Assembly: GCA_965649825.1 (NCBI GenBank) | Contig: OZ287694.1 | Location: 867,197 to 931,196, forward strand | Direction of reading: 5' to 3' | Source: Penicillus capitatus | Lineage: Eukaryota; Plantae; Chlorophyta | Length of the DNA: 64,000 nt | Part shown: piece after piece, positions 4,469 through 59,319 of the stretch | How positions within the stretch are numbered: the first letter of the stretch is position 1 | Layout: each line of letters starts with the position of its first letter | Notes under the pieces: generated by a model | The model's input: the letters and a program-made list of their open reading frames with translations, nothing else | The model's database searches: none | What the model was told of the DNA's origin: nothing | Position numbers and translations under genes: made by a program

Positions 4469-4500
<32 letters not shown>

Positions 4501-6535: not shown

Positions 6536-6564
6536 GGAGGCATCGATGATGGGACGTGTGTCAG

Positions 6565-15247: not shown

Positions 15248-18200
15248 TTAAACATCAGTTGATGCTCTGGAGTGTGATTGTGGATTGGAGACGCCAGTTT
15301 CTTGTCGTTTCTGACACAAAAGACTCAAAGAATCAGTTATGCTTGCTAAGCCATAGGCTGCTAGGACACGACACATTCCCCCTTCTTGTGCTTCCCTTAC
15401 CCCCTCTTCCTTAAGTACTGCTCTCACATAAATCTCCGCCGTCTTAAGGGTCTTGTGTAGAAAAAAGAGAAACAGGCCAGTGATGGCCAAAGACAATGAA
15501 ATAGTGAGCAGCACTTTGGAAGTGTTGGATGTTCGCTCATCGCTGAAAAGAAGACCAGCGGCAAAAGTGAGCTGCGAAACGATCAACGATGCCGTTTCGT
15601 AAGAGTTCAGGGCGTCAAATTCCTTCTTGTATGGCTGACAAGAAAAATGCGCATAGGTGGCACATGTCAGCACGGAGAGAGCGAGAATTCCTTGAATGTT
15701 GGCACCCAGTGGATAACAGAAAACGATAATCGTTGCCAGAACTGCCTTGCGGAACATGATGATGGACTCCCAGAAGACAAAGCGCTCTTTGTAGGCTCGA
15801 TAGAGAAAACTCGTTGCATCGGAGAACCACAGGATCTTGTCAGCTTCCAAAGCACGCTGTTTAATCAGAGCGTAGACCAAAGCAATGGGCAGTCCAGCAG
15901 AGATGATGATAACGACAGGCCAACCGACCGTGGTGGCCAGAACCGCGTGCGAGCCTTCGTAGCATTTGAGAGATGTGTCCACTGCCCAGTAACGGTCTAT
16001 CCTGTCGACGTCGACCTCTACAGAATCGTGGACGTCAATGCAATAGAGGGCATTGACTGCTGTCCGGGTGATGGAGACGTAGGTCAGGTAGGCCACGACC
16101 AGAAAACTCAGCAGTGCTCTCCTGGCAAAGTACCACACATTTTCATCGAGTGTCCACATCAGCGTCAGCCAAAAGGCAATGTAGAACATCAGAACGGCAA
16201 CAGGAACCAGCAGATAGATCACTGTTCGAATGATGGACCGAGCTGGTTCCTGTTCTGCACTGAAGAAACAGTCGATGGAGAGCACGATGCCCTCAGATGC
16301 GGCTCCACTCACAAAATCTGCCAATCGCATACACCGTAGACACCGGATCACGTCATATCACGTCTTACCTGCTGCCGAGAGCAACGAAAGCATCCACGTG
16401 TTCCAGTCTGCATTGATGGTCGCAGCGGATGCCACAATTTGGAGAAAGTTGACCGTGATCTGACAGTCCAAGAGAGCGGTCAACAATGCAAGACAGGGTA
16501 TGCAGAGATGGCGCACTTTGAAGATCTCGACGATGTGGTTCTTGGCCAGTACTGGATCGTCTTTCATTCTCTTTTGGAGAGCGGCGGACATGATCAGGTC
16601 TGGATGGACGATCTCTGGCGGTACGTATCCACTCTGTAGCATTTCCACCATCTGAAAATCGACCGGAACATCCGTCACATGCTGTTCGGCTTGCACAATT
16701 GGAATCCGATTCCTTCGGCTGACTCTCGAAGCCGTGGAGGGTGTCACACGTTTTCTGGGAAGATTGCTTCGAATGGCAAAGCACGAAAGACCGAACAGCA
16801 CAATCAGAGAGAGCACGAAGAGTCCAGCTGCGGCGAAATCGCTGTAACACTTGCCGCAATTGAAGGCAAGTGAGCGTCCATATCCCGATTCACACGATCC
16901 ACAGAGAACACCCGTATATCCCTAGGCCATATCACTCCATCCATAGATATGTGGACGCCAGTCAATAGAGATCACTTTTTTGCACTGTGCTTCGGTGTAT
17001 GCCGTGTCCAGCGTCTCATTGTAATCACAGCTGTCCACATCCTGCGTTGCCGCCACCAGATCCGCCTCACGCTCAGCGAAGCCGCAAGCCTCTTTCGAGA
17101 GACACTGTTGCATGTACTGCGAACACGGGATTCGGTGCCAGTATCCCTTGTCCGGGTGGATGACATTGGTCGTGCAGTTTCCATGTTCCGGACAAGGCAC
17201 GCAGGCAGAGTGATTGGATTTGAAATTGTACTGCGATCCACTGCATTGCACACAGAGCGTGCCGTTCTCCTGGACAAACTCGCCAATCCGACAGCTCCGA
17301 ACTTCGACTTCAATCAGGAGAGCTGGCAGTCCAGGTTCGCTGAAATTGATATGAATCTCGTAGACTCCTGGATGCTGGAGATTTGAAATCGCTGGAAACG
17401 GTTTAGGCTGCTCGTCTAGGGGCACCGTCAGTTCTCCAGAAATGAACCGATCCGGAGACGAGATGGTTGCCAGAATGACTGCATCTTCTCTGCCAAGGGA
17501 CAGGTTCTGGCCAAATCCATCCACAACGTCAACGAAAAGCGGCGGAAGGGGATCTCCACTTCTGTGATTGCGAACAACGACTCGATGATCTTTGAAACGT
17601 ATCTCTTCGTTTGGACTCTCTGGGTTCTCGATGAATGCCCGAGTGGACTGGGCATAGGACGCAAGAATCGGACCGTAGCGATGGGCATCGTTTGATTCCC
17701 AATCGGAACACGCTTCGCGATTTGGATGGAAGGTGTCGAGTTTCTGGAAGGTCTTGTTCGAGTGCAGCTCTGGTGGGACGCTTGTCTTTTTGCTGCCACA
17801 TGAGTAGCGCAAGATATTGGCATCTTGCACAAAGATGCCGCCACCTGCAACGTCGGCGCTGTTTCTCAAGAGACCGCAGCCAGTTACGGCGACGAATGTG
17901 CACGAAGCATTGGTTCGGGAACAGCTTCTCGGTCCGTATCCAGTAGACACATGGACAGCACCTGCAAACGTGGGTATTCAGAATGGATGATCGCAAATGG
18001 TTAAACGCACCTCCTAGATCAGCTCTGTTGTAATTGAATGCACATTCGTTCAGCTGCAGTGCCAGATTCTGCGGCACGTCCGATTCGAAGGCGATGCCGC
18101 CGCCATGTTCTCCAGCGACATTGTCGCTGAACGAAGAGCTGGACGACAGGAATCTCGATGATCTGTCTGCGAAGACGCCGCCGCCTTTAGCTTCAGCGTG

Positions 18201-21200
18201 GCACGCCGAGATCCACAGTTCAGAAGATGTCATACTCGATCCAGAAAGTGTTATTCCGCCTCCCGTCCTCGCCGCACAGCTCTTGACGAACACATCGATC
18301 AAGGCTGCTGAACTGTTCTGCATCAAGGCCATCGACCCTCCAGATTGTGTGGCCTCGTCGTGCAAAAAGCTGGCGTTGTCCACTTGCAGATTTGAATGCG
18401 CGAGCAACAACGAACCACCAATGGATGCTTTGTTTTTCGAGAAGGTGCTCTGACTCACGTTCGCGACTGAATTCTCCGAATGGACTCCACCTCCAGCTAC
18501 AGTCGCCAGATTGTGATGCATTTCGCTGAGACGGATCGTCACACTGCTGTTCACACGGCCAAAGATGCCAGCTCCGTATCTGGATCTACTGCCGTTAATG
18601 ATCGATTCTGCGATTGTCAAGACACTCATCTGGTCTCCAAACAACGCTCCCCCTTGGTCACCCGCGGAGTTATTCTGAAAAGTGACGTCTCTTGCACTGA
18701 ATGTGGAGCCATGACTGTAAATGCCTCCACCGAGGATGCCTGCACGGTTGGATAAAACTGTGGAGTTCTCGAGCACAACGTTTGCTCTTTGGTAGACACT
18801 CAGTCCTGCTCCATTGCTTGCCATGTTCGATTCAATGCTGCAGCGTTGCATGAAAACAGTCGAGTTGTCTATGTGCATCGCGCCGCCAATACGTGCCGTG
18901 TTGTTGCGGAGATCCGAGCGTAAAATATTGCACTCGATCACACCCTGAAGACTAATCCCTCCACCAGATCCGGGTGATTCGCAACGGTTGCCTCGGAGTG
19001 TCAGATTTCGGGCCAGGATCGGACCACAGAGGATGGCATCCATTGCTCCACCAGAGTTGATGGCTGCGTTTGAAATGAAGCGCGAATTGGTGATACTCAT
19101 GTTGCCCTGATGACAGGCAAGACCGCCACCTCGACTCGTGTGGGCGAAGTTCTGTGCGAACGTCACATTTTGTATGACGGTCTCTGAAGTCAAGACATCG
19201 ATGCCGCCGCCACGGTGACCTCGATTCTGTATCACCATACAGTTTCTGAGGCGCATCCGTGCTTTCGAAGAGGCAACCGCGCCACCTACGGTATCTGCAG
19301 AGTTGTCTGAGAAAAGGTCTTCTTCAGAGTCGACCGTTCCGTCCTCGAATGAGAATCCAGCTCCAGAGTTTGCTCGGTTAGATATGTAGAGCGATGCTTG
19401 TGACGTGATGTTTGATGATTCTGAAGAGAATCCACCTCCTTTCCTTTTTGCTGTGTTGTTTGTCCATCTGACCTCTTGGATGACAGCACTTTTCTGTTCA
19501 ATGAATTGTGCGCCGCCGCCGTTTTCTGTGACGGTGTTGTTGTAAAAGACAGATTCTTTGATAACAAGTTCTCCGGATCTGGATGACTGCAAGCATCCAC
19601 CGTTTCCAGACGTGTTGTTGCCACAATCTATGTGGGAAAGACTCGTCCGATCAACTTCCACGAGATATAGTGCCCCTCCAAACGTGGACGCGCTGTTATT
19701 CTCAAGAACAGAGAACCGCATGTTTAGGACATTCTTCTCAATAAAAATGGCTCCTCCGCGATCGCTGGCCACGTTGCTTCGAAATGAGCAGCGGCGGATT
19801 CTCAGGTCGGTATTCGTAGAAGCGACGGCTCCGCCGCTTTCCGCAGCGTTGGACTCGAAGCTGCAGTTAGAGAGAGCGAGCCTCTCAGTGGCATTGGACA
19901 GAATTGCCGCTCCTGACAGGACGGCATCGTTGCGGCGGAAGGCGCTGTCGGCGATGCGGACCCTTGAAGAGCGGTTGAGCACGATCGCCGAAGCTCCTCT
20001 ATTTCCTTCAAACTCGGCCTCCGTGATCTCCATCTCGCCGTTGTCGACTCGAATCGACGAGAGTCCATTCCCCCTCGAGGCGAGACCGGAGACAGAGGAG
20101 TTGGACTCCGGCGGCATCAACATCAACGACTGAGGCGCGTCTCCCGGAGACAGTCGGACGTTTCTCTCCAGCACCACTCGGCGCAGCGTGTTCCTGGAGG
20201 AGAGGCTCCCGAAGCAGCCGTCCCCGCACACGTTGTCCGAGAAGTCAACGTCCACCATCTCGATGGCGGAGCACGCCCTTCGGTCCACCGAGATACCGCG
20301 CGCTCCATCCAGAGAGTTGTTGCGGAAGGTCACATGGTGCAGCCGAACGGTTCCCTCCGTCGCGTCGGGACCGCACCCGCCCACCTGAACAATCGATCTG
20401 TCTTCTCTTTTCAGAGAGCACCTCTGGAAGACGATGTTCGCGATCGTCACGTCCTGCGACCTGCAGACAGATCAGCCTGTCTTCCACGAAAGCCAGTGAG
20501 CGGCAAGGACTCGCCTGATGAAGAAGATGTCCTGCTTCTTCGGACACCTGAATGTCGCCTTGGCTGCCCGTGGGGATACGCCGTCTTCCAGTTCTGTATT
20601 CTCGTCTGAAGACGCAGTCAGTGTCAGGTTCCACGAAATGACGACTGTCGTCGCCGGACGAATCACGTCGTTGCTCCTGATTCGAATGACATCCTTCTCT
20701 TGCGTGCAGTTAACAACGGCACCAAAGTCGATTCTCATGTTCCTCAAGGTCTCGCTGCTCACTGTCCATATCCTCGTGCCGCTGTTCAAAAACTCTGATA
20801 TCTCATTCTCCACGAGCTGACATAATGAATCTACTCAAACAGTGTTGCTCAATCAAGCTTGCTACTCGTTGGTTGTTTATGGTTACCTTGGCTACTTTGA
20901 TTGCTATCTGTCTGCTGTAACACATGGCGAGATCTTCTTTCCGCCTACCAAAAAACGCTCCTTGCTCGTTGTCGAAATTTCACGCAGCGAAAGGATAGTC
21001 TTTACTCACCTTGTCGGGCTTATCGTCGAATTTTCCTCTTCCCCATTCGATAGCCCGCGGCACGGACCAGCTGAGCTCTCCTACACAGCACAAGGTAGTT
21101 CATGCTTTCTTCGCACTCAGGATATCTATCGCGCAGTCGGCATCTTAATGTCGACTGTGAAGACTGTCGCTGAGAGGAAGGACATCAATTGTGACAGTGT

Positions 21201-22978: not shown

Positions 22979-23791
22979 TTAGAGCGATGTTGTTGCGTTT
23001 TCATTGGCAGGCATGGAACCCACTGCATCCGGTTCATTCAGTTCGAATCTCTGAAGCGAAGCACCAGGAGGCAATTGTCCGATGGACACACCGGGTGGTA
23101 TCTCTTCGAAGAAAATACCTTCTGGAGTCACTTCAAACGGAACTCCGGCCTCGATCAAAGCCCGTGCAACGACGAGTGCTTCTGTATCGCCGGTGGTAGA
23201 ACCGACCACCACTCCCTGAGTCGTCGGCAACGTCATGACCGGGCTCGGTGATGCAACCGGACTTGGTGATGCAGCAGCGACCGGGCTCGGTGATGCAACC
23301 GGACTTGGTGATGCAGCAGCGACCGGGCTCGGTGACGCACGCACGGTCGGTGACACAGCATCTGAAGTAGCAGTGGTCAATGCCGACCCTGAGATCGAAG
23401 CTGTGGCTCCGGCGCCATCACTCGAAGCGGTCGATCCGAGAGATAATGCAGGCGAGGATGGCATTTCCACGAAGATGCCTGTGATAAAGAAGCCAAAGTG
23501 GTGATCCAAAAGTCGCCGCTCGGTCATCTGGAAGACCATCGCTCGGCTGGCTTTGGACATCTCTGGCGTGAGGGTTTCCTCGTGCAACACGCGTGAAGCT
23601 GCACAGAAGCTAGCGACCATCGCCGACGAAATCTGCCGAAGACGATGACTTACTCGCAAGAGAGATAAGACTGTGCAGAACGACCTACAAGCACAGCCAG
23701 CCATCAACGAGGTGCGATTTTGCATGCCCTTAGGCATGACGAGAAAACGCACGAGGATGCAGATGCGTTTTCTGTTCGTCCGGCTCGACAT
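22979..23791 (-). CDS. Small secreted preproprotein A (type I) with Ser-Pro repeat linker
   Basis: Model MSSRTNRKRICIL|VVLHSLISLAT|SRVLHEE with 68-nt (phase 0) and 55-nt (phase 1) introns around a 31-nt micro-exon. Contains RRLLDHHFGFF and C-terminal ALIEAGVPFEVTPEGIFFEEIPPGVSIGQLPPG. Confidence 0.8.
   Translation of the reverse strand: MSSRTNRKRICILVRFLVMPKGMQNRTSLMAGCACRSFCTVLSLLRVSHRLRQISSAMVASFCAASRVLHEETLTPEMSKASRAMVFQMTERRLLDHHFGFFITGIFVEMPSSPALSLGSTASSDGAGATASISGSALTTATSDAVSPTVRASPSPVAAASPSPVASPSPVAAASPSPVASPSPVMTLPTTQGVVVGSTTGDTEALVVARALIEAGVPFEVTPEGIFFEEIPPGVSIGQLPPGASLQRFELNEPDAVGSMPANENATTSL
23238..23335. repeat. 42-bp coding tandem repeat (about 2.3 copies) encoding SPSPVA/SPSPVAAA
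   Basis: accgggctcggtgatgcaaccggacttggtgatgcagcagcg occurs exactly at 23238 and 23280, partially at 23322. Confidence 0.9.
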
Positions 23792-24140: not shown

Positions 24141-27100
24141 TCAGATGTCGGTAGATGTGCCCGGCCGTGCTCGAGAACTGGATCGGTCGGTACGGTGTCT
24201 GCGAATAAGGCGATGGTACAGAGAGACGAAATGCATGACGAGAAAGATTCTCAAGACACTGAGCATTCCCCATTCCTGCACATCCTCCATGCCTTCGCTT
24301 TCCAGCACTGCCTTGATGTACATCTCGGAGTATCTGAGGAGCTTGTATACGAAAAAGAAAAAGAGGCCACAGATGGACGTGGACAGTGCAATCGACAGGA
24401 GAATTCGAACGACTTCAGATGTACGATGGTCGTTGAAAAACAGGCCGCAAGCAAAAGTGAGTTGCGAAACAACTAGGGAAGACGTTTCGAGAGCGTTCAG
24501 AAAAGCAAAGTCGTTTTTGAATGGCCGGCAACAGACATGGATGTAGATTGCCAGTGAGAGCAAAGAAATGGCAAGGATGCCCTGGATGTTGACGCCCAGG
24601 GGGTACGAGAAAACAACGATGACAGCAAGGACGGATTTGCGCAGCATGACAATGGACTCCCAGAAGATGAAGCGCTGTTTGTAGGCGCGATAGAGGAATC
24701 CGGTGGCTTCGGCTGTCCACGAAGCTTCGGTTTGTTCTGTGGTGTTCTGTGTGACCAGGAAGCCTGCCAGAATGAGGGGCATGCCAAAGGAGATGAGTAT
24801 GATCACTGGCCATCCAATCGCGCCTGCGAGAACGGCGTGTGAACCTTCATAACATTTGAGGGACGTGTCCACTGCCCAGTAACGAACGGTACGATCCTTT
24901 TCGGTATCGGTCGGATCGGCCACATCGATGCAGTAAAGAGCATTGGCTGCTGTCTTGGTGATCGGAAGGTATGCCAAGTAAACCATAGCCATGCAACTTA
25001 ACAGCGCTCTTTTGGCAAAATACGAAAGGCCCCTGTTCAATCGGATGGCGAGAATGGTCCAGAGAGCGATGTAGAAGACGGTTATCCCCAGAGGCACGGC
25101 AAAGTGGATGACGGATCGCAGGACGGATCTTGGAGGATGATGATCTGTGGCGAAGAGACAGTCGACAGAGAGGACAATGCCATCGGTCGCAGCACCGCCC
25201 AAGAAATCTAGAAAGAGAGAACAGCATCGTCATCCGTGCATCACAGGCAACAGAACGCGCCTGCAGTTAAGAGGAGATTGCGCATCCAGTCCGTCCAGCT
25301 CGTGTTGATGTACACAGCGGCGGCGACAACTTGAAGAAAATTGATTGTAATCTGCAAGGCATGTATAAAGAGACCGTTGAGCTCATGCCAAGATCTCACT
25401 TTGAAGATTTCCACAACGCTTTGTTTTGCCACGACTGGATTTATCTTCGGCTCATTGTCTTCGTGGACAGCAGACGTCAGAAGATCCGGATGGACCATTT
25501 CAGGAGGCACATGTCCGCTGTGCAGCATTTCCACCATCTGGAAGTTGACGGGCACTTCTGTTGGTAGCTTTTTCGCAGATATACGTCGACGAATGCTCTT
25601 CTTGCTGGCTCGAACGACAAAACTGGTATCCATCGTCCGCGTGTGCAGGTTGCTTCTGATAGCAAAGCCAGACAGAAACAAAAGCACGATCAGAGAGAGA
25701 ATAAAGAGAGACAGCGTTCCAGCATTCTGGTAGCATTTGATGCAGTCAAACGAACGCGAACGTCCGTAGCCTCCATCGCACGATCCGCATAAGACCCCAG
25801 CATATCCCTGCATCACACATCTGTCCCATTCATTTCAGTATTGAACAGAGATCACACTTTTTTGCACTGGGCTCGGGCGTAGGCATCGGCCAGTTGCTCA
25901 TCTAGTTCACAGCTTTCCAATGTCTCCGTCGCCGTCGTCAGTTTCTTCTCTCGATCGGCGAAGTCGCATGCCTCTCTTGATATGCATTGTTTAATGTATG
26001 CTGAGCATGGTGATCGATGCCAGTACCCCCGTACGGGTTGGATGGCATTGCCAGCACAGTTTCCGTTATCAGGACAGGCAGAGCATTCCGATGCATTGAG
26101 ATCAAAATTGTATAGAGATCCGCTGCAGGATACGCAAAGCTTCCCGTCTTCCTGAACAACCTCTCCCAGTCTGCACTGTCGAACCTCAATCTCAATAATA
26201 AAGCGCTCGATACCAGGTTCACTAAAGTCGATGTAGATCTCGTAAGGACCTGGACTCTGAAGGCTTGAGATGGGCGGAAACCCCTTTAGCTTCTCATCCA
26301 GTAGCATGTTGATGGAACCAGTGAAGAAGCCGCTGGGCGATTGTATCGTGGCTGTGATGTATTGATCCTGTTGTCCCAAGGGAGGACCTTGTCCGAATCC
26401 ATCCAGTACTTCCATCTGAACAATCGGGAGTGGATCGCCGCTTCTGTGATTCGTGGCGACCAGATGGTTGCCCTTGATGGGTGCACGGTTTCCAGTGGTG
26501 CTGCCTCGTTCGGCGAATTCCAGGACGTTTGTGGCATAGGAAGCCACCGTATGACCATAACGACCGGCACGGTTTCGCGACCAGTTGGGACACACATCGT
26601 GAGCAGATGCCAAGAAGTCTAGATCCCCAATGACGTCAGCTGTGTAGGGTGCTGGCGGAATCTCTGTGCGTCTAGAAGAACAGGCGTAGCGGAGAATGTC
26701 AGGATGCTGTACAAAGATTGCGCCTCCAGCGATCTCTGCTGTGTTCTCTGAGAATGTGCTGCCTGTCACAGCAAAGAGGATACATGATGTTGTCTCCACT
26801 GAGCAGTTATGTGGGGTAAATGCTGTGGCGACATGCACAGCCCCTACAAGCCATTCACAGATGACGATCTCTCACAATATCCTCTAGACATGGTTACCTC
26901 CAAGACTTGCTGCATTACTCTCAAAACTGCCATTGTTGATCTGCAGTGCAAGGGATCGAGATGCCCCTGAGCTAAAAGAGATCGCTCCTCCTCTCACCCC
27001 AGCCACGTTATCATGGAAGACACAGTCTGAACAGAGAACCATTGATGTGCCTTTTGCCAGGATCCCTCCTCCGTCTCCAACTGCACGGCACATCTGAATG

Positions 27101-30100: not shown

Positions 30101-30460
30101 ACACATGGTGACGAAACGCAGAGTACTTGGGTGTCGTGTTCGAAATGTGCCTCCTTTGCTGACCATGGCGAAACGGGAGATCGAATGGGCCCTAGAAAAT
30201 GCTCTTGTCTTGCATTGCCGCTTGCAAGAATGATGGACGACGAAGGCGAACAAATACGGAAAGGTGTTCGCCGTATACGAAGTATCTATCGTAGGTCGGC
30301 ACACCGTCGAGAGCGGCATACCCGCAGAGCGTTTCGGCATCGATAAAACATCGCTGGTTCCTTCCATGTCCTCCAAGGCGCAATGCGCTTTGAGCAAAAG
30401 AGCGAAGACTGCGAGAATCAGCGCGAAGCGCTTCGACGAACGCCCGGCCAGGCGGTTCAT
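24141..30460 (-). CDS. Receptor-like protein copy 2 (head type II)
   Basis: Signal peptide MNRLAGRSSKRFALILAVFALLLKAHCA; beta-helix exon 26884-29640; stalk 25852-26838; TM exons 24141-25816. Same intron positions as copy 1. Ends STDI-TGA. Confidence 0.85.
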
Positions 30461-31922: not shown

Positions 31923-32702
31923 ATGGCGAGCTCTTCTTCCATTAGACTTCTCTACTGCCTCGTAAGTCTGTCGATGCCAATCGGCGAAGCTGTCTGAACA
32001 CTCTCTGTGGCAGATGGCCGTTCTCTGTTTTGCCTACGGAGCAGGTGCCGTTTCTTAAAGAGATTCCGCCTTGAAGTTTGCTCACTCGCGTGTTCTTTAG
32101 CGACGCGTCCTTTGGCCGACGATGGGGCTGCGAATTTTTCTGCGATGAGAGACGCTGCGACGGCGTTTGGAAAACCGCAAAGACACCTCTTGTTCTGGTA
32201 CTACAAAGTCGCCTGCCCTCCCCCACCCGTTAGCGCCATGCAACTTGCCGTCGCTAAAGTAGTTACTTCTGGGGCAGCATCCGGTTCGGCAACGGCACTG
32301 ACCTCCACCGGCGATGGAGGAACGTTACTGGCGATGGCTGAATGTCTTCCGCAAAAGGATGCGAGTCAAACATGCGAGGCATCGGAAGACGTGCGAAGGG
32401 CCATAAGACGACGATTCTCGTTTTGCGATCAGAAGGATGCCGCTGTCGTCGATGCTCTTCTCAAAGCGAAAGTGCCATTCAAACTCAAACCGAACGCCAT
32501 TTTTTTCGAACAGATTCCAATGGGTGTCACTATCCCTCAGCTTCCGACTGGAGTGTCTCTTGAAGACTACCGAGCAACAGAAGAAGACAAGGCCGAGTTC
32601 CGTGCGCAGAAAAGTATTCAGAAGAAAGACACTGGCGGCAGCATCCAAGTTTCTGCAACGGCATCGGCCAAAGCATCGCCGGACATGCCCCATGGCAGAT
32701 GA
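31923..32702 (+). CDS. Small secreted preproprotein B (type II)
   Basis: MASSSSIRLLYCL|MAVLCFAYGAA|TRPL with phase 0 and phase 1 introns around a 31-nt micro-exon. Contains RHLL, AECLP and C-terminal ALLKAKVPFKLKPNAIFFEQIPMGVTIPQLPTG. Confidence 0.8.
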
Positions 32703-39887: not shown

Positions 39888-40085
39888 GTAACGTGGACGG
39901 GCGCCGTAGAAAACCGCCTCATTTCTGACAATTGACACGAAGGTGGTGCGACGGACCTTCTAACATTTGCCTGGCTGAAAGTATATGTTGGGAATCGAGT
40001 GTAAGAGTGGTTCAGACGATAGTCGAGTCCTTGCGCGTTGAGACGACGGAAACGCAATCAGATTTGAGGCAATACGAATAGGAGT

Positions 40086-40295: not shown

Positions 40296-40313
40296 CAGAT
40301 GACAGTTAGATGT

Positions 40314-41080
40314 TCATTTCCTACAGTATATCAAAACACGACACTTCATCGCAGAAATCCACGAACCGTGTACGCTCCGAAGAAGAGAAGAGCGTTGTTC
40401 TGTGACAAGTGAGAGGCCTGCTGTCTGTCTCTGATTGCTGACCGCAATACTGCCGTCAATTGCTACTGTCTCGCCGAAGATTTGGAGGTTCCGCAATGAT
40501 TGATCGTTAACTTCTCCTGTTCTCACGGAGAGAGAGAGACTCACCTAAAAGACACCATAGAAGATGCATCGTACACTTGTACGATTCGAGAAGGATTGTC
40601 GGCGGCTGTAAGGACCATTTTGATTGAAAGCAACTCTTCGGCCAATAAACATTCTAATAACAGATTCGTTACACGAATCGTTCGACATGAGAAGTCGACG
40701 GACAACACTAGTGGCGGAGGAATCTCCAATCTGTCCATTTCAACACGGACAGGAAAATAACTTGGGTATGCTCTGAGGACATGTGTCAGCTTAGATCTAG
40801 TGTCGACCAGAGTCCCAGACACATCACCAGATCATCTGGTCTTAATTTTACGGAGAACACAGAGAATTCATTTATAGCTGCATGAATCTTTTCGAGTGGA
40901 ATAAAATAACCTCAAGAAGACAGGCAATGTCTTCAGAATGAGGAGGCTTGACGAGTCGATGTCGAACGACATCATACACGTGTAACGTTGAATGTGTACT
41001 GCTGAAGAAAAGAAAGAATACTGCAGTTTAAAACAGTCGTTTTTCAAGTTTGGATATTCAGAGAAATGCAACCGACCCAT
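40314..41080 (-). CDS. Possible uncharacterised or decayed multi-exon gene
   Basis: Three consecutive minus-strand ORFs (40868-41080, 40541-40822, 40314-40544) with a gtgagt donor near 40540. No recognised domain. Confidence 0.25.
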
Positions 41081-47100: not shown

Positions 47101-47577
47101 CATACACCTACAGCAAAAGAATAAGATGGAATAGAAAGTCAAATCTTCATGGACCTGTGAATGCTTTGCAGAGGCATCTCCTATTCCATCAACTGTCGGC
47201 TGAACCACCGAACGAAGCTTTCCTACTCAAAATTCCTCCTCGGTCTTGATCAACTTATAATACATTTAAACGAAAGCTGACATTCAGTCACATCCAAAAA
47301 AAGATCATATGCCTCGTTCCAGCAGAGTCTCGCAAAGCACGGCAAAGCAAAGTCGAAAAAGATGTCTCCCCAGCAAAACTGAAATGGCGACGAAGGTAAG
47401 GTTGACAGTGACTCGTTTACCTGTCTGGCTTTCTGTGTATGTCCGTTCACAACTTCCGCTGTCGTTCTCTGCCTCGACGGTCTTCGTGTAAATCAGCAGC
47501 GAAAGCGCCAAGAAGACCAAGACACGGCATTTCTCCGAGTGGAGCCTTATAAAAGAGTGAAACGCCCTTGCCGCCAT
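41182..47577 (-). CDS. Receptor-like protein copy 4 (head type I, mosaic)
   Basis: Signal peptide MAARAFH...VLVFLALSLLIYTKTVEA; beta-helix exon ~43918-46610; stalk 42872-43860; TM exons 41182-42860. Ends GTTV-TAA. Confidence 0.85.
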
Positions 47578-48647: not shown

Positions 48648-49259
48648 TCATTCTTCGTATGCAAAATCCTCAAGATCCACTCCAGGTGGCAGCGGTCCCA
48701 CAGGTATCCCGATCGGTACCCGTTTAAATAACACGCCGTCAGGCGTTTGTGAAAAAGGCACTCCTGCCTGAAGTAGAGCCAAAGCGACGAGTTCGGATTC
48801 CTCGTCCTCTGCGTTCACACGAAAGCTGCGTACAGGAACGAAATGCAGAATCTTGCACGTCGGTATGCCAGTAGTATTCGTGCAGCTTTTTTGCACTCGG
48901 GTGTCTGTTTTTCGATCGACGTAGACACCCCCGAGAAAAAACCCCCAATGACGATCCTGTAATCGTGGCACCTCCATTTGATCATCTTGATCGATTTCGA
49001 GCTGTCTCTCCGCCTCGAAGTCTGGGTCTCGCTTTGTAATTTCGACTTGCTCTGTTGCCGAGGCAATCGCCACTGTAAACAACAACCGTTGTCCACCTGG
49101 GCTGGTCATTGTGATCAAATCGCACCTGCATTGCGGAAACAGCAGAAACAGACAGTGGCCTAAAGCACGACGCAGAACACATTGTGAATGTTGCGTTAAC
49201 ATAGCGTGAGCAAAGAAATGCCGCCGTACCAGAAGGAGAAAGTGTGAGAACGCGAACAT
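48648..49259 (-). CDS. Small secreted preproprotein C (type I)
   Basis: MFAFSHFLLL|ATVCFCCFRNAV|AIASATEQ with 70-nt (phase 0) and 53-nt (phase 1) introns around a 34-nt micro-exon. Contains RLQDRHWGFFLGGVYV and C-terminal ALLQAGVPFSQTPDGVLFKRVPIGIPVGPLPPG. Confidence 0.8.
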   Translation of the reverse strand: MFAFSHFLLLVRRHFFAHAMLTQHSQCVLRRALGHCLFLLFPQCRCDLITMTSPGGQRLLFTVAIASATEQVEITKRDPDFEAERQLEIDQDDQMEVPRLQDRHWGFFLGGVYVDRKTDTRVQKSCTNTTGIPTCKILHFVPVRSFRVNAEDEESELVALALLQAGVPFSQTPDGVLFKRVPIGIPVGPLPPGVDLEDFAYEE

Positions 49260-50470
49260 GGTTCGATAGCGTGTCTTCTGACACTTTGCCTTGTTAGTGT
49301 ACAGGCTCTCGCCAATGAAAAGGCAGATGACGCGAAAGTGATCGCGTTCTTGGAGAATATATGGTCCACATCATTACACGGGATACGCGGCAGCAAGAAG
49401 ATAGGGGTGAATGACTGGCTGCAGTGTTCTGCAGTTCCATCAGTCTGTCGCATCGCATCCTTCAGAGCCATCTTGTGCACAGAATAACTACCGTCTTGCT
49501 GCAGAGTGGAGAGCTTCGCCTTTAGTGCACAGTGTGTCGGTATGCACAGTATCTGCCTTTGTTTGAATACAAGTGTTCGGCAGTTGGCGATAGCTTTACC
49601 GCACGGATTTGATGGAAATTTTGTCGCGGCGGAATTGGAGGATTGCATACTCGATATATGAAGACTGCCAGAGTCGAGATGCTAGTAGAGCGAAGAAGGC
49701 AGACGAATCACAATGTCGCTGACGGCTGAGCAGTTGCCATAACCTCGCTTTGTTGTGATAAATTTGGTAAAAGACTTCAGAGGCCAACTGCAATTGTCGA
49801 TCCCGAGATTAGCTCTTGTGCAGTCCAAGTGACCGGAAATATGTTTCTTGATAATTCGACCAAGGACTCGAGGGAATCGCAAGATTCTCCCTTTCCGCTT
49901 TATCTCGGGAATTTTGGAGTGGATTACCTCACTCATGAACCAGCCGCACAATGTAAACATCTACGCATAAGACAGATACACGAATAGCGGATTCATAGTT
50001 TGTTATGGCCAGGTAGTGTCAAGTTGATCGGACGTTCTTCATGAGGCGTTTGGACGATGCTGAAAGCCAACGGTGTATATTGCTGAGTCTCTTGCCTTTT
50101 CTAAGAGATTGTTGTTACGTTGTCCGAATTGAAATCCTGATATTCTTTCTGTTACACGCAGTGCGATACAGCGTCAGACGTACAAAGATGTTTCTTTCCC
50201 TGGAATATTTGTCTTTCTTGGATCTCATTCATATCAAATCTTACAACCAGATTTACGTCAAAAAAACAACAAGTTATCCATTGCGAATCAAATCTACAAA
50301 GAAACGACTGTGCGGTTTGTGTGTATCAGACTTTTGAATCTCATTGCCAAGTCGACAAAACAACAGGCTTGTTGTGTTATCGATTCCACAATCAGCAAAA
50401 AAGAAAAAAATGCACGATGGCGATCTGTGCATGAAGGCCGGTTTGCCTAGGTAAAGAAACAAAGAAAAAT

Positions 50471-53400
50471 TCAGACACCGGATGAGGAGCCCGGATCTGC
50501 ATGCCGAGCTTCATTACTCTGTTCCGGATCTGTAGGCTGAGCTGCATGACTCTGGTTGCGTTTGCCACATAAACGTCCGATCAGGTGACCGATGCAAATG
50601 GAAAAGAAGACTCCCAGAACGCGAAAAACACCCCAGTTATGTGCTTCTTTCATGCCTTGCCCGTCAAGAACGACTTTCAGATACACTACAGCAGATGTGA
50701 CGAAACTGTACATCAATGTAAGGAAGAATCCGCAGACTGATATCGACAATAACGTCGTTACCAATATCCTCACTATGTCAGAAGGGCGGTCGTCATTAAA
50801 GAACAGGCCAGACATAAAAGTGAGTTGCGAGATAACCAAAGAACCTGTTTCCAGAGTGTTCAGAGAATGAAAATCTTCGCTAAAAGGTTGACAAGTGACG
50901 TGAACATAGTTTGCGAATGTGAGAATGCAGACAGCAAAGATCCCCTGGATGTTTGTTCCCAACGGATAGGAGAACGTCACCACAACTGTCAGGACAGCCT
51001 TCCTCAGCATCACGATCGATTCCCAGAAAACAAAACGCTCTTTATAGGCGCGATACAGGAACCCAGTGGCATCTGCCAGCCAAGGATTCTGATCGGGCTC
51101 CTGGGAACGCTGCCGGATCAAGACATAAGCCAAGAGGGCAGGCAGTCCGAAAGAGAAGATGGCGAGGACCGGCCAGCCGGCAGCCGCGGCGAGAACAGCG
51201 TGAGATCCCTCGTAGCACTTCAGGGAGGTGTCCAGCGCCCAGTACTCGTCGGTGTGATCATCGTCGAACCCTGTAGAATCGTGGACCTTGATGCAGTGGA
51301 GCGTGTTGACGGCCGTCTTCGTGATGGAGACGTAGGTTATGAAGGAGACTGCCAAAAAGCTGAGCAGCGCCCTCTTCGCGAAGTACCACGTGTTCTCTTT
51401 GTACTTCCGAGTCATGAGGATCCAGAAGATGAGGTAGAAGATCAGTATGCCTGCAGGAATGAGGAGTTGGACGACCGATCGCAGCACGGATCTGGGAGGA
51501 TCGTTGTGTTGATCGAAGAGGCAGTCGACAGAGAGCGCCACTCCTGCAGTGGCAGCTCCGCTTACGAAGTCTGCAGACACAGCAGCCAGTCAGCAGCCGG
51601 ATCTCGGATTTAAACAGCAAGCATACCTGCCCCGAATAGCAAGGAACGCATCCAAGACGTCCAGTTCACGTTGATGATTGCAGCTGCAGCGATCACTTGG
51701 AGGAAGTTGATGCTGATCTACAACACAGAACAGGTCGAAGGAGGGAAGCCACGAAGGACGTTCGTTCTGCCTTGAAGATCTCGACGACAGTCCGCTTTGC
51801 AATAACTGGGTCTGCTGTCGATTTTGTATCCTTAGATGCAGAGGCAAGCAAATCTGGATGAACCATCTCGGGAGGTACCTCTCCTCTGTACAGCATTTCC
51901 ACCATTTGGAAGTTGACTGGAACGTCGGTCGACGGTCTTTTCTTCGAAGGGACAAGGCGACGATTTCTTCGACTGATTCGATTCGTCGTGGCCTGATATC
52001 CCACCGGCTGAGTGTTCAGGTTACTTCTTATTGCGAAGCTGGAGAGAATGAGCAAAACGAAGAGAGACGCCACAAGAAGCAACACGGTTCCGGAATCGTG
52101 AAGACACATGCCACAATCAAATGACCAAGAACGTCCGTATCCAGCATCACATGAGCCACAGAGGAGCCCTGTGTAACCCTGAGACAGAGAACGCTCAGCA
52201 ATTGGAATATCACTGTCGAAGCTCACTTCTTTGCATTGGGCCTGAGAGTAGTCTCTGTCCAACGACTCGTCCAGTTCGCAGATCTCCATTTCGCTTGTCA
52301 CATCATCCAGATCGTCTTTACGGCCGCTGAAGTCACAAGCCTCTCGTGATACACATTGCTGAACATGTCGAGAACAGGGTGTTCGATGCCAGTAGCCTGC
52401 GTTTGGGTGGATGACTTCGGTGGTGCAGTTCCCATTATCGGGGCATGGTTGACACATTGTTGCATCTGGATCGAAGTTGTACTGCGATCCGCTGCAGAGA
52501 ACACAGAGCGTCCCGTTCTCCTGGGAAAACTCTCCCAGTTGACATCCTCTGACTTGGACCTCGACAGTCAGCGATTCCAGTCCAGACTCGCTGAAGTTTA
52601 TTTGGATCTCAAACCGGCCCGGACGCTGGAATCCTGTGATCGGCGGGAATCCCTTCCGCTTCTCGTTCACTGGCATGTTGATCTCTCCAGAGAACAGATC
52701 ATTCGGAGAACGCATGGTTGCCTCGACGAATGCGTCGCCTTCGCCGAGCGCAGGACTCTGTCCATACCCATCCAGGACCTCGACGAGAAGCGTTGGTAGG
52801 GAATCTCCGCTTCTGTGATTCTTGGAAACGAGTTCGTTGTTCTTTACCGGCTTCTCGGTCTTTGTTGCATCGTTGTTGCGTATGAATCCCCTGGCGGATC
52901 TGGCAGACGAGGCGATGTTTGGGCCGTATAGGCCGGCCTCGTTTGTGGACCACTCCGGACAGATATCCTTGGCCGATTCCAGCGCGTCCAATTCTTTTAA
53001 AACATCTGTCGCATCGATCGCTGGAGGGACTTCTGTGTCTTTGGGAGAGCAAGAGTAACGAAGGACTGTTGGATCTTTCAGGAAGATGGCACCCCCTGAC
53101 GTCTTCGCCTTATTCCTCGAAAACCTGCTGCCTGTTACCGCCACAAAGGCGCAGGGATCCTCTGGATTCGTGCAACTCTGTCTACGACTATGAGTGGCAA
53201 CGTGCACTGCACCTATAACATGATGACTCTCAGGAATTGTTTGCTTCTGAATTATTCCCACACCTCCAATACTGGCATTGTTGTCGTTGAATGTGCAGTT
53301 GTTTAGCTGCAGCGCAGGAGAGCGGGGCTCGGAGGAATCAAAGGCGATTGCTCCTCCATGTTTTTCAGCTTCATTGTCAATGAAAGCACATGTGGAGCAC

Positions 53401-56400
53401 AGAAAGATGGAGGAAAGGTTAGCATGAACACCTCCGCCTGATTCTACTGCCTCACATTCAGTAAACTCGACCCCATAAGCTGTGAGACTTGAGTTGGAGA
53501 GCCAAATGCCTCCCCCACTCTGTGCACTGCTGTTCGAAAACGATGTGTTGACGATGGTCAGCAAGTTCTTCAGATTCGCTGCAATAGATCCACCAGACGA
53601 GATCGCTGTGTGATCTGCAAACACGGAGTTCCTCAACTGCAAACTGGAGTTCCTCATGATTATCGATCCCCCGAGCTGGGCCATGTTTCTCTCAAAGGAA
53701 CTTGCATTTGCAGCCAGTTGGGCATCTTCCAAGAAGACAGCACCACCTTCTCCGACTGCAGTGTTGTCCGTAAGAAGACTGTCTTGAAATGAAGCCGTCG
53801 AAAATCTATCAACATAAAGGCAGCCTCCGAGTACAGAGTTGTTTTCAGTGAAGGAGGAGTTCCTTGCTTTGAAGACACCCGACACAGAACCATTGAGGCA
53901 TCCTCCTCTTACTCCAGCAGAATTGTTCCTGACGGTCGAGTTCACAGCAATCAGTTCCGCATCAACGACGCGGAAAGCACCACCAAATCTTTCAGCTCTG
54001 TTTAAGGATACCGACGAATCTTTAAGGATGAGCACACTTCCGGTGTAGACTCCCAATCCTCCGGCAGCACTGGATGCACTGTTTGTCTCAATCTTGCATC
54101 CAGTCAAATTCGCCATGGTTCCACTTTGAGCTGCAAGTGCTCCGCTGTCTGATGCCGAGTTGACCTGGAAAATAGATGCAAACACTTCGATCATAGACTC
54201 GCCAGAAGCGCTGATTCCTGCGCCAGTTCTGCGGCAAGTGTTTCCATCGATTGTCAGATTTCTGGCAGTGACTGAACAGAGTCCTACGTCCATGGCGCCT
54301 CCAGATCCGTCGGCATAGTTCGACAAGAACTGCGAGTTCACAATCGTGACGTTACTCTGAAAGCAAGCAAAACCGCCACCTCGATCTGGGATAGCTGAAT
54401 TCTCCAGGAAGGTCATGTTGCTCATCGTGGCAACTCCATCGGATACACTCACGCCTCCACCGAAAAACCCAACGTTCTGCGATGCCACACAATCTCTGAA
54501 CTTAATCGTCGAAGCACGTGTCGCTATTCCTCCGCCACCGCTTTGCGCGGAGTTTCTCGAATAGTTGTCGCCTGTCATTGTAGCAGTCCCATTCACAATC
54601 CATAATGCAGCTCCATCGGTCGTCGCTGAATTGTCCATGTAGTGAGATTCGAATGACTCGATGTCTGAATCTTCAACTGACAATCCTCCTCCTTTCAACT
54701 GGGCACTATTAGAAGACCATATGACTTTTTCTATTCGAATGCTGCTCATCTCGTAGATCTCTGCTCCGCCGCCGTTGAGCGAAGCCCGATTGTCTTGAAA
54801 GTGACTTTGCCGGATGATCAGACCTCTTGATGAATGACTGATCAACCCACCGCCTGTCGCAGCAGCATTCTTCTTCAGTGTACAGTTGACCAATGCTGTT
54901 TGTGGTGATGCAATAAGAGAAACGCCTCCACCGCTGTTCCGGGCCACATTCTTTCTTAAGGTTGTGTGCTCCATGTTGCTGTCAGAGATGCTGTCGCAGT
55001 AGAGTGCCCCGCCGTTCTCTGCAGCATTCTTTATCAAGACAGATCTCTGGATGACGAGTTCTTCTGTTAGGAGTGCCGACAGACACCCTCCATTACCAGC
55101 TGTGTTGTTGCTGCATTCTACATTGGATATTCGTGATGCAGTCGTCGCCTCAATAAAGATTGCGCCTCCATTACCAGAAGCAGTGTTGCTCAGAAAGATA
55201 GAGGAGGACAGCTCTAGCATTCCGTCGGAAACAAGGAGTGATCCTGCATCCTTGATGGCCACATTGTTTCGGAAGAAGCAATTGTGGATCGTCAAATTGC
55301 CGTCAAAGGAAGCGACGGCGGCACCGGTTTCTGCAGAGTTAGAAGTAAAATTGCAATTAGACACCGCGATACTGATAGTGGCATTTGAAAAGATCGCAGC
55401 TCCAGATTGCTGGGCGAAGTTCTCATGGAATGCACTGTCTACGACCGTGACAGCTCGGGCTCGGTCCAGCAAGAGAGAGGATTCGCTGGAGGTTTTGATC
55501 TCAGCAGCCCTCAACTCCAGACTGCCTTCGACGATATGGATGACAGACAGTTCGTTTGAACTGGCTCTCAGACGGTTAATCGTCGACGAAGATCCTGACG
55601 AGGACGACATAAGGGTTGACGATAACCTTCCTTCAGAGATGCGTCTGTTCTTCCTCAGAGTCAATCCTCTTAGATCGTTCTCCAGAGAGAGTCTGGCAAA
55701 GCACCGATCACCGCAGGTGTTGTCTGAGAAGGCGACGTCGATCATCTCCAAGGACGAGCAGGACGAACTGGAGAAGGAGAGACCACTGGCTCCGTCGAGC
55801 GAGTTTCGTCTGAACGCCACGTGATGGAGCCTGATCAATCCCGGAGAGCTGTCCGGCAAGCAGTCGCCGACCTCGATGATGGAGGCATCATCTCCGTCCA
55901 ACGAGCAGCCCCGAAAGACGAGATTGGCCAGGAGTACACTTTGAGACCTGCAGAAGACTAACGGTCAGTCACATCGCCAATCACGCATTTGCTTTTACCT
56001 GATGTGAAAGATCCCATCCTTCGGCGGACATCTGAGTCGGACCTTTCTCTCTGCCTCCGGGAATGTACCATCAGCGAGCTTGGTTGATGTGACGTAGGAA
56101 CTCAGAGTGAGATTCCAAGGCACTGTGACTCTGGCAGGCACTCGTATGTCGTCCTCGACGTCCAGAAGAACGACATCGTTCTCTCTTGTGCAGTTGACGA
56201 TGGCACCAAGATCATCGGATACGCCTTCCAGTGCCGCCGAGTCCACCAACCATGTCCTCGTCTCTTCGTCCAACAGCTCTGCTATCTCTTGTCGTGTCAG
56301 CTGGCACGCCACATCTGTCCACGCCAGACACAGTTGGACTATGGTTTCAGAACAGCTTCTCCCTTACCTTCGGTATCAGGGCCGCGGGATCTTCTCTGCG

Positions 56401-56854
56401 CCAAACCACGAGTAGGCGGGCGACCCTTACAACAGTCACGTTCAACACCGCAACCCGAGAGATAGAGAAGGTAACAAGATACCAGAGCTTCTTGAGGGAA
56501 TCCGGCTTTCTGTAGATTCCAATCTGCAGTGTGTCCACTCCTAGTATCTAGCAAGACGACATCATCACTACGTCGTCGTATTGCGAGAAACGCAGACAGG
56601 CGCAGTACGCCGTACGCCGTACGCGAACGCGAGAAGTGAAGTCCACCGCCGTATAAGCAGATTACGGATGCGACGTCTAGAAAACCCGCTTACAAACCTG
56701 GAGAGAATAGTTTTTCGGTGAAATTGACGCGTTTGCTTTCTTTGATCGTTGCGTTGACCCTTGTAAACAACAGAAGCAAGGAGCAGAGGTGAGTCATTTT
56801 GGAGCATTGGCGGAATTTGCGGCGGGAGTATTCTCTCCCTTTCCGCATCTGCAT
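50471..56854 (-). CDS. Receptor-like protein copy 5 (head type II)
   Basis: First exon ...MTHLCSLLLLFTRVNA|TIKESK; ORF 51693-55901 spans beta-helix, stalk and TM1; TM exon 50471-51580. Ends SSGV-TGA. Start codon approximate. Confidence 0.85.
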
Positions 56855-58695
56855 GTGCAGCCTATCGTGTTCGTCCATACTAAGACGCAGACGCCTTTTT
56901 TCGCTGCTACTTCCTGTTGTTTAAACAGAAACCTTAAAGTGTCTGGCTCCTCGAAGCAACCTGCGGGCGCAATGATATAAACTGAGAGTCATTAGCCACG
57001 AACATTTGTTACCGGCGATGACGCTACAGCGAAGGATGCCAAGTGTCCTCCGCTTTTCAACGTGTCGGTCACCTTCTGGTGTGTTCGTTCATTGATAAGT
57101 CGCTCCGTCGGTCGAGTCAAAACGGCAAGGGTTTTTATTGTCTGTCAAAAATACCGTGTGTTCGTCCGTTCTGTAAAGCAGTGTTGAATTGTTTCGCATT
57201 TGCTCGACTATGTGGAAAGATGCACGAATTCGATCGAGCCGCCTTGCTCAATATTTTCCAATCCAGTCGATTTTCGTTGTTTCTCAACTCGCCAGGCGCG
57301 TCTGTCCGGTGCGCTTGGGAATGTTAACCAAGTGCCCAATCTGTTGATAAACAGCCTTGCATCTGGCAGATTCCTCTTTCGGCTGACATAAAAATACTCA
57401 CCGTTTTCCCTCGGTTGTCGTTTGAATGGCCCATAGGCCTTAGGCGGCAAGACGTTAACAAATCTTAGCAGTTGGGTTGCATTGAGATGAATTTTTGACC
57501 TTCGCAAGTTCGTACTCCAAATATAGCGATAGAGAAAGTCGACTGTCGTCTGACTTGATCTTGTGGAAAGCGAATAGAAGAACGAAAGCTGCCTTGACAA
57601 TTGTTCGTTTGTTCGTTTGTTATCTATCCTATTGTATTCATAATGAGATCAAAATCGCACTAGACGTCCCGATTTATTAATTGTGAGGTGTCGACATCTG
57701 CTGATCGAATATTAATTACTATGTATGCACTACTGTGTCTCTCATCGGCATTTCTTTCATTCTGATTGGACAACTCGAGCTTCATCCCGAATTCGCGAAA
57801 GAGTGGGTAGAAAGGTGTTCACCACAGCACGACGTCTAAGTTATCACGGATGCATTGAGAAATGACCATCGGTCATTTCATCTGTCAAGATAGCAAACAC
57901 TTCGAATGGACTGTCTCACTGTCCTATCTCTAACAACATCAGCACATGAGAAGACGGATTACCTACAGTTCTTTTTGCACACGAGAAGATCACACCACAA
58001 ATGTTGTTGTGCGTATCAAACTGAAAGTCATGTCCGTTAGTTCATTTTCTTGCTTTGAGAAACTGACGAAGTCTCTTAGCAGATGGCAGTCGCTTCACAT
58101 AGTAAAGGTTGCTTTTTTAGATTAAGAGCTGAAATCATCCATTCATGCTGCTGTTTCGCAGATGGTATCAAGACAATCACGCAAAGTGGCTTGTCTTTCG
58201 AATCAACGACGCTCTTACCAGTTTTCGTTTCTTACCTTAGATGAACGCCGTAGGTTCTTCGATGGAGATAGAGGAAATACGATCCTTCTAGAATGAGATA
58301 GATAAGAAAGCTGAACAAACAAAAAACCGACCCGTATTGAGTCTGAAAACGGGCGGAGAAGACGTCAGCGGGGGCGAAGAAAAGAAAACGATTCAGCGCC
58401 AGTGGATATTGGTAGACAGACAAGACTTAGACTTCGGGTCAGCGACGTGATGAATAGCCAGCTGTGTACTTGAAAAAGAAAGCGCATTGTTACTTGGTAG
58501 CTTCCCATGCAGCAGGCAAGCACCACCGTATGACTCGCGTTTTCGCATCGGTGATAAGAAGCTGGTGCCAATGCCCCCGCGGCCAAGGGTATTTAAACGG
58601 AGAGCCGACTCTTTCGCAGTATACTTTTTCTGGAGAGTGAAAAGCAAGGTTTACAAAATCGGAAGACCACGAAGAACGTCGTCATACTGAAAACC

Positions 58696-59319
58696 ATGTC
58701 GTCGTTAGCACTCAGGCACTGTTTCTCTTGCTTTGTGAGTCGTCCATCGATATTTAAACGGATCTTTAGCTAACTCAGCGGTTTTTATCTTAAGGCGATA
58801 CTGTGCTGTCTCGCTCTTACTAATGGTAAGTCCCTCGAACAAGAAATCGTGTATAACAGTAGAAGAATAAACTGTTAGCCACAAGAGGTTTCGCAAGGGA
58901 AGCTGCTGCCGACCAAGAACTCCTGGACGATACGATGACGTTGAATGTTGATAAGCAAAGAAGACGATTATTACAGGACGGGAGATATCGCGTCCCTGAC
59001 CCACCAATCGCGGCTGCTGATGTGGCGGGTAGGAGCTTCCTTCCAGTCCGTCTGTGCGAAGGGGTCATTTTTAGAGGAGCTGTCGAGTTGCGATGGCTTT
59101 TTTGCAGTTGTTGAATGCATCCCAGCTAACACAGGACGGGCTCAGCTCAGGGGAATCTTGAGTCGTCTATTCGAACCGAACGACCTTGTTTTGTTCACGT
59201 TTCTCCTTGATCTGGGACTGCCGTTCACTATTCAAACTGATGGCATCTTTTTTGACCTGACAATACCCACGCGCTGCTCAGTTTCAGTGGTGAAAACTCT
59301 TGATATGATCCTAGGATGA
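58696..59319 (+). CDS. Small secreted preproprotein D (type II)
   Basis: MSSLALRHCFSCF|AILCCLALTNA|TRGF with a 31-nt micro-exon; RRRLLQ; third 46-nt intron; VECIP; C-terminal FLLDLGLPFTIQTDGIFF (diverges afterwards). Confidence 0.7.

Follow-up and report, generated by a model that had tools for sequence, protein, structure and literature searches.

The 64,000-nucleotide window of Penicillus capitatus DNA analyzed here (contig OZ287694.1, forward-strand positions 867,197 to 931,196) is eukaryotic and carries a run of very large minus-strand genes whose open reading frames (ORFs) are broken by short introns. Six receptor-like genes or gene parts (R1 to R6) lie on the minus strand, and a six-frame profile scan of the window found exactly four small genes (A, B, C and D), which share one common C-terminal domain. 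The array is built of modules consisting of a receptor and a small gene; its receptor genes are mosaics, with conversion between paralogues ongoing, and one module, D-R5, exists as two old, intact alleles. An earlier note on this DNA had read the locus as a higher-order repeat of ~18 kb in which the subtype of the receptor head co-varies with the subtype and orientation of the small gene. The observation behind that reading is partly confirmed; its interpretation as a duplicated four-gene cassette is mostly refuted.

R1, R2, R4, R5 and R6 are intact over their readable extent. The receptor is ~1,900 amino acids (aa) long and is made up, in order, of a putative signal peptide (a hydrophobic N-terminus, judged by eye in R2, R4, R5 and R6), an N-terminal head, a beta-helix of ~900 aa, a Cys-rich stalk and a multi-pass tail. 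A 5' exon of ~105 aa is termed ex0; the short introns and upstream exons were read from the frames. The beta-helix is right-handed and composed of Chlamydia-type PMP repeats (Pfam PF02415, E values of 3e-20, 3e-12 and 1e-6), with the 20.6-bit gathering threshold exceeded by R2 (70.5 bits), R1 (45.9) and R5 (28.4). The Cys-rich part, ~330 aa, gave weak Pfam matches, to Ephrin_rec_like and NCD3G. It is followed by one transmembrane (TM) segment, the NFLQ helix and then at least six hydrophobic helices, making about 8-9 in total. The tail (~350 aa) is conserved, hydrophobic and predicted to be all-helical, with a mean model confidence (pLDDT) of 70. It had no Pfam match up to E 5, and a Foldseek search of its model against the PDB returned nothing at E <0.8, rows for G-protein-coupled receptors (GPCRs) and gustatory receptors being at chance level.

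Like chlamydial Pmp proteins, these receptors have GGA[ILV]/FxxN repeats in a long right-handed beta-helix and belong to a multigene family of surface proteins. The Pmps, however, are bacterial autotransporters with a C-terminal beta-barrel, whereas the genes here are eukaryotic and intron-bearing and encode a Cys-rich stalk and a helical multi-pass tail; no Pfam match to an autotransporter domain was found in the receptors. Trichomonads likewise have eukaryotic membrane proteins with PMP repeats, which form expanded families and are proposed adhesins (PMC6701047). In those proteins, one TM segment close to the C-terminus precedes a short NPx[YF]-bearing cytoplasmic tail (PMC6701047), in contrast to the about 8-9 hydrophobic helices and ~350 aa tail domain without Pfam or PDB match of the receptors here, and linked small genes such as those of this array are not described for them. 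A literature search for PF02415 in eukaryotes gave chlamydial and trichomonad work only. Family C GPCRs share with these receptors a large ectodomain, a Cys-rich stalk and a helical membrane domain, but the receptors have an extra TM segment and a long loop before the tail. Tested for membership of that family, the receptors scored 15 bits with NCD3G (cut-off, 38.9) and had no 7tm_3 match, and the best Foldseek E value was about 1. A distant relative in EukProt (P0080) does combine PMP repeats with 7tm_3.

A near-identical copy of the region, in reversed orientation, was found on an ENA metagenome contig, ERZ25074695:ctg340529 (1.84 Mb), by exact look-up of the N-terminal ORF of HSP90. In the PDB, the N-domain of this HSP90 comes nearest to plant HSP90 structures, with human a close second, too small a margin to be informative. 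Six overlapping loci of this contig were joined into 93 kb with no conflicts and aligned to the window in 1 kb bins. Exact look-up of the window ORFs 41182-42378 and 62294-63820 gave no record, and the region past the window was reached via the homologues P0066, P0060, P0039, P0012 and P0030. Several related species were assembled from the same sample, ERZ25074695. Trees were built for five domains per receptor, taking receptors from the window, from ctg340529 (R5c, R6c, R7c and the unlinked paralogue in L004), from a species designated 1 (L001) and from a species designated 2 (L007); in bootstraps of the ex0 and small-protein sets, distances were capped for very divergent pairs. Synonymous divergence (dS) was estimated by the method of Nei and Gojobori.

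R1, R2, R4, R5, R6 and R7 (the last beyond the window) each have a small gene ~1-2.5 kb upstream, as do the receptors in L001, L004 and L007. The encoded proteins have a C-x8-10-C pair followed by an alpha/beta core, [AG][VL]P[FY]..G[IV]xF; in A, a low-complexity insert replaces the Cys pair. The likely start of C is at 49109 (MTSPGGQRLLFTVAIASA), and its N-terminus is signal-peptide-like by eye, as is that of s7, the small gene upstream of R7. C is 86% identical in amino acid sequence to its species 1 counterpart, with a dN/dS ratio (nonsynonymous to synonymous divergence) of 0.16, and A has an orthologue in another species (P0181). The family is restricted: a whole-library profile search found eight genuine representatives among 1.84 billion, all from these metagenome contigs. 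The small proteins had no Pfam match up to E 5, and a Foldseek search of the PDB with an AlphaFold model of C (mean pLDDT 63; 70-83 in the core) gave no match at E <1. Two members have compositional peculiarities: in gene A (23200-23450) a Ser/Pro/Ala-rich ASPSPVA(A) run separates two conserved parts, and s7 (L003 1665-2200) ends in a long Pro/Lys repeat of the KPKVVPFQP type.

The gene order and head motifs quoted in the earlier note are present, type I in R1 and R4 and type II in R2 and R5, and EC[LI]P occurs in B and D as claimed. The motif ascribed to A and C is there as well, although its spelling was one residue off (it reads RL.D.H[FW]GFF..G..V). The ~18 kb repeat itself did not materialize. 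In a self-blastn of the window, similarity was confined to receptor coding parts (64-68%) and four short patches of high identity (86-94%), with no match between A and C, between B and D, or in intergenic and spacer DNA. The repeat distance is about 26 kb instead of 18 (25.9 kb from R1 to R4 and 26.3 kb from R2 to R5; R4 to R6 is 19.9 kb), and 8.5 kb of it is unrelated spacer. Perfect co-variation of head and small gene among only four pairs has a chance probability of 1/6. Nor is EC[LI]P a character common to B and D, for it sits at non-homologous cysteines: in B it marks the first Cys of the C-x8-10-C pair, 43 residues before VPF, and in D the second, 34 residues before LPF. It is thus not a shared derived motif.

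The phylogenies bear out some of the proposed groupings and not others. R1 and R4, together with the species 2 orthologue, form a group with 100% bootstrap in ex0, head and PMP, but the grouping falls to 0-3% in the Cys-rich part and tail. R4 pairs with the species 2 orthologue (96-100%) and is thus closer to it than to R1, so that the R1/R4 duplication predates that species split; in the Cys-rich part R4 joins the R5/R6 group with 100% bootstrap. Bootstrap support for R2 with R5 reaches 57% in the head and stays at 0-1% in each of the four remaining domains, the R2 head being 50% identical (aa) to that of R5 versus 42-47% to the others. A and C do form one class, with orthologues in two other species, though with moderate bootstrap (44-56%). 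B and D do not group (0-4%): B falls with the A/C class and the L004 small gene, and D with s6 and sx, two small genes beyond the window. Identity to B is 32% for the L004 small gene, 29-30% for A and C, and 23% for D. Upstream of the R4 orthologue of species 2 (L007) there is a co-directional A/C-class gene, which indicates that one two-gene module was duplicated. Hence, of the two cognate pair classes said to have been duplicated as one cassette, the class comprising an A/C gene and a type I receptor is real, but R2+R5 and B+D are not clades. Every receptor of this genome has its upstream small gene, in one of two orientations: the two type I receptors run in the same direction as theirs, and the five others (R2, R5, R6, R7 and the L004 receptor) are transcribed divergently from theirs. 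This pattern is explained by common descent of one duplicated module.

Identities and bootstraps compared domain by domain disagree between domains. The first ~250 codons of the head ORF have a dS of 0.03-0.04 between R1 and R4; beyond them it is >1. All three type I motifs lie inside this single tract and are therefore not independent characters. In the patch shared by R1 and R3, all 22 differences between the R1 alleles of the window and ctg340529 fall at sites that differ between R1 and R3, one allele having the base of R3; R1 and R3 differ at only 6% of sites. Likewise, 26 of the 33 allelic differences within the R1/R4 tract fall at sites that differ between the paralogues. That allelic differences match the bases of paralogues indicates that conversion is ongoing and includes the R3 pseudogene fragment. 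Between R5 and R6, dS is saturated in PMP and 0.07-0.4 in the Cys-rich part. The impression of an 18 kb repeat then has three sources: one old duplication of a module of A/C-class gene and type I receptor, from which A-R1 and C-R4 derive; a recent conversion, through which the R1 and R4 heads became nearly identical; and the orientation of all the other small genes, which happen to be divergent from their receptor. A general caution follows for families of this kind: one recent conversion tract may be enough to give paralogues common motifs, and similar short motifs, EC[LI]P for example, may occupy positions that are not homologous.

The earlier note predicted that R6, which runs off the window, would have a type I head and be followed by a minus-strand gene of the A/C type. 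On ctg340529, the last 508 residues of a 1257 aa ORF, P0066, are those of the window's R6 ORF, and its head is type II, with LANLVFRGCSL, RDRCFA, SNELS and NGNLTI; upstream of the window end, R6 reads SVLLANLVFRGCSL ... RDRCFA ... SNELS ... NGNLTI. The small gene that follows ~2.5 kb further along, s6, belongs to a third subtype (GVPFKIETNGVKF) and lies on the plus strand in head-to-head orientation to R6; past it come a gene for a cytosolic leucine-rich repeat (LRR) protein, sx, R7 and s7. The alternation of types I and II thus stops at R6, and both parts of the prediction fail. With this third 'unit' breaking the pattern, duplication of a ~18 kb four-gene cassette (type I receptor, A/C gene, type II receptor and B/D gene) carrying two cognate pair classes becomes very improbable. 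The order I, small (minus), II, small (plus) does occur twice in the window, ex0, head and PMP unite R1 with R4, A and C are one class, and the R2 head is slightly nearer that of R5. Against these points, DNA similarity is absent outside the coding patches, R2+R5 and B+D lack bootstrap support apart from the 57% in the R2/R5 head, the EC[LI]P positions are not homologous, and the head identity of R1 and R4 is the product of recent conversion.

R6 closely resembles R5 in places: ex0 is 98% identical in amino acid sequence, and the DNA of ex0 and head together is 90.6% identical. Species 1 (L001) has a single receptor here, an R6 orthologue (72% identical in PMP and 82% in the tail) with the same s6 gene upstream. 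The R5 body as a whole is missing from it, so R5 is a presence/absence difference between species; what it keeps, at L001 14263-18062, is the D region and a vestige of the DNA upstream of R5 (matching window positions 59393-56053, followed by 50163). R5 is nonetheless old: its PMP part is 48-49% identical (aa) to that of R6 with saturated dS, and an R5-type gene, internally deleted, is found in another species (P0070, 543 aa, on a contig of 1,176,683 bp). It follows that the 89-98% similarity of R5 and R6 in ex0, Cys-rich part and tail is due to conversion. The possibility that R5 is a recent copy of R6, considered in view of the 89% nucleotide identity of the tails and the lack of R5 in species 1, was rejected on the same grounds, the 48% identity in PMP comparing with 72% between R6 and its species 1 orthologue. 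A further divergent R6-like ORF, with an R5-like C-terminus, is P0061 (1421 aa, on a 30 kb contig); P0061 and P0070 are further alleles or mosaics of the locus in public assemblies.

Alignment of the window to ctg340529 set one module apart from the rest. Identity is 100% over 2-13 kb (except for two 1 kb bins at 99.7%), 100% over 61-64 kb and 96-99.6% in the rest of the array, but it drops steeply in a block comprising R5, D and the DNA between them (Table 1). The edges of the block are sharp: it begins just 3' of R5 and ends just past D. Both R5 alleles are intact and full-length, with ORFs of 1402 and 1399 codons, a dS of 0.23-0.31 and a dN/dS of 0.26-0.31; dS between species is 0.45-0.6. 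In amino acid sequence the D alleles share only 47% identity (dN 0.55, dS 0.70, dN/dS 0.78), and both keep the Cys pair and the FLLDLG[VL]P[FY]TI..GIFF core. Within the block, divergence is greater in intergenic DNA (68-75% identity) than in coding DNA. The window's R5 protein has an exact match on a second contig, of 31.9 kb (P0059). The D-R5 block fits, without proving, a recognition pair kept polymorphic.

Such a block might also have come about through a one-off replacement, by introgression from a co-occurring sister species or conversion from an unsampled paralogue, or might be a chimera of metagenome assembly. Conversion is rampant in the array, the sample contains several related species, and the dS between the R5 alleles is about half of that between species, all of which would be in keeping with one of these origins. 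We consider such an origin rather unlikely, since the two versions are collinear and intact between flanks that are 100% identical, and the window R5 protein recurs exactly on the P0059 contig. Moreover, neither allele is found at any other sampled locus (species 1 has no R5, and P0070 is 63% identical), and the excess of intergenic over coding divergence is what is expected of old orthologous alleles.

The locus is thus probably a lineage-specific tandem array of modules, each a receptor with an orphan small gene upstream, that evolves by duplication and conversion and in which the small protein would function as a secreted partner. The array expands through tandem duplication of two-gene modules, and short conversion tracts between paralogues, some of them from the R3 pseudogene fragment, keep patching it. 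The small protein could be a ligand or co-factor of the neighboring receptor's ectodomain, co-regulated with the receptor, and selection may have preserved alleles of D-R5 that are old and diverged together, which would suit a pair serving self/non-self, mating or partner recognition. A stronger version, in which each beta-helix receptor reads the adjacent small secreted protein, D-R5 is a balanced, idiomorph-like polymorphism for mating type, gamete or kin recognition, and new specificities arise via conversion between paralogues, with the pseudogene fragment as a further source, seems to us unlikely.

Several observations weigh against the partner interpretation. Signal peptides were judged by eye only (in C, s7 and the receptors) and are not clear-cut in A, B and D. 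In one related species (L010), no small gene was detected within 10 kb of the receptor. D does not always adjoin R5, whose gene body is absent from species 1, and sx (L005 413-1033, minus strand) lies between the 3' end of R7 and the cytosolic LRR gene (L005 2883-4439, plus strand) with no receptor adjoining. The D-R5 comparison rests on two haplotypes, dN/dS is <1 everywhere, and the sequence beyond position 64000 comes from ctg340529, a 100% match to the window over 61-64 kb, instead of from the window's own record. Pairing of sx with the LRR protein as its 'receptor' was considered and rejected, because the LRR protein has neither a signal peptide nor a TM segment.

The L010 receptor and the position of sx would be natural if adjacency implied no interaction, the two-gene segment being merely the unit of duplication and the function of the small protein being unrelated to receptors. 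Co-duplication alone accounts for the association of type I receptors with A/C genes, as the earlier note allowed, and the small proteins offer no hint of a ligand in fold or family. We nevertheless regard bare adjacency as rather unlikely, because the pairing persists across paralogues that are saturated at synonymous sites and in at least three species, the small-protein family is found only where the receptor family occurs, and the divergent block covers exactly D and R5 and ends just outside both.

If the array is a system of receptors and secreted partners, its closest parallels are genetic. The S-locus of Brassicaceae consists of the receptor kinase SRK and its small Cys-rich ligand SCR/SP11, tightly linked and maintained as old, strongly diverged haplotypes, with suppressed recombination, many alleles and cognate binding. 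The array resembles it in having linked genes for a receptor and a small protein that are intact in two old, diverged haplotypes, but the receptors here have no kinase domain and no sequence relation to SRK, and they come from a different group of organisms, so that the likeness is one of genetics only. In Dictyostelium, tgrB1 and tgrC1 are likewise an adjacent divergent pair within a tandem family of paralogues, with very high polymorphism and locally made variation (PMC11088635, PMC12745789). Both Tgr proteins, however, are large single-pass membrane proteins with Ig folds, unlike a giant multi-pass beta-helix protein paired with an orphan of ~100-250 aa; again the likeness lies in the genetics and not in the sequence, and the array is known in two haplotypes. 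It is well known that polymorphic surface proteins can form tandem families whose evolution proceeds by duplication and conversion. The combination of a new receptor architecture, an orphan small-protein family that travels with it and a sharply bounded two-gene block with two alleles has not previously been described. Were it a recognition system, it would provide a new and experimentally tractable example of a receptor and its partner from an unsampled eukaryotic lineage. Of the whole locus, the D-R5 haplotype block most deserves further work.

Table 1. Positions of genes, gene parts, conversion patches and the divergent block in the window (nt, nucleotide)
Feature	Positions	Strand	Remarks
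BTB/ankyrin gene	430-921	-	housekeeping flank
HSP90	4135-6333	-	one short intron
SSF transporter	6556-7895	+	split by intron; housekeeping flank
SAS-6	10254-10883	-	housekeeping flank
R1	15248-~20831	-	type I head; signal-peptide exon not located
R1 multi-TM tail	15248-16351	-	
R1 NFLQ exon	16403-16459	-	
R1 Cys-rich ORF	16922-17950	-	
R1 PMP beta-helix ORF	17529-20450	-	
R1 ex0	20517-20831	-	
A	22979-23791	-	A/C class; upstream of and co-directional with R1; RLLDHHFGFF...; C-terminal domain GVPF..GIFF..IPPGV..LPPG
R2	24141-~30460	-	head weakly R5-like, about 50% aa
R2 tail	24141-25202	-	
R2 Cys-rich ORF	25852-26838	-	
R2 PMP ORF	26884-29640	-	
R2 ex0	29643-29948	-	
R2 putative signal-peptide exon	30380-30460	-	by eye
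B	32007-32702	+	head-to-head with R2; full C-terminal domain
R3	34742-36098	-	internal receptor fragment (pseudogene); 94% identical to R1 17544-18877
R4	41182-~47577	-	type I head; Cys-rich part R5/R6-like
R4 tail	41182-42378	-	
R4 Cys-rich ORF	42872-43957	-	
R4 PMP ORF	43903-46782	-	
R4 ex0	46665-46970	-	
R4 putative signal-peptide exon	47470-47577	-	by eye
C	48648-49259	-	A/C class; upstream of and co-directional with R4
R5	50471-~56797	-	type II head
R5 tail	50471-51580	-	
R5 ORF	51693-55901	-	one ORF spanning PMP and Cys-rich part
R5 ex0	56001-56315	-	
R5 putative signal-peptide exon	56750-56797	-	by eye
D	58945-59319	+	head-to-head with R5; short domain form FLLDLGLPFTIQTDGIFFDL
R6, 3' part	61036->64000	-	exits window; full ORF is P0066, type II head
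R6 tail	61036-62112	-	
R6 NFLQ exon	~62240	-	
R6 Cys-rich part	62294-63820	-	
Patch R1/R3	17544-18877 and 34742-36098	-	94% nt identity
Patch R1/R4, head and upstream exon	19536-20804 and 45682-46952	-	92% nt identity; recent conversion tract (1.27 kb)
Patch R4/R5/R6, Cys-rich	42993-43816, 52330-53153 and 62889-63712	-	86% nt identity; conversion tract crossing both head types
Patch R5/R6, 3' half	50615-53369 and 61147-63928	-	89% nt identity
Hyperdivergent block (R5, R5-D intergenic, D)	49500-60000		10.5 kb; 68-92% nt identity to ctg340529

The housekeeping flank at 430-14000 is 99.4-100% identical between the two assemblies. Within 34429-36400, the R3 fragment is bracketed by direct repeats of ~300 bp (34447-34747 and 36088-36390) that are 86% identical. 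The spacer between R3 and R4 contains an isolated plus-strand ORF (39112-39474) with N-terminal matches of the SMC_N/AAA type, and ~340 bp at 39986-40325 is absent from, or unalignable to, ctg340529. Long antisense ORFs on the plus strand occur inside the receptor genes, at 15647-16339, 28262-29506, 50825-51613 and 61432-62307. The metagenome gene caller lists some antisense ORFs as genes (e.g., one of 291 aa at L005 13761-14636), sometimes in place of the true tail exon.

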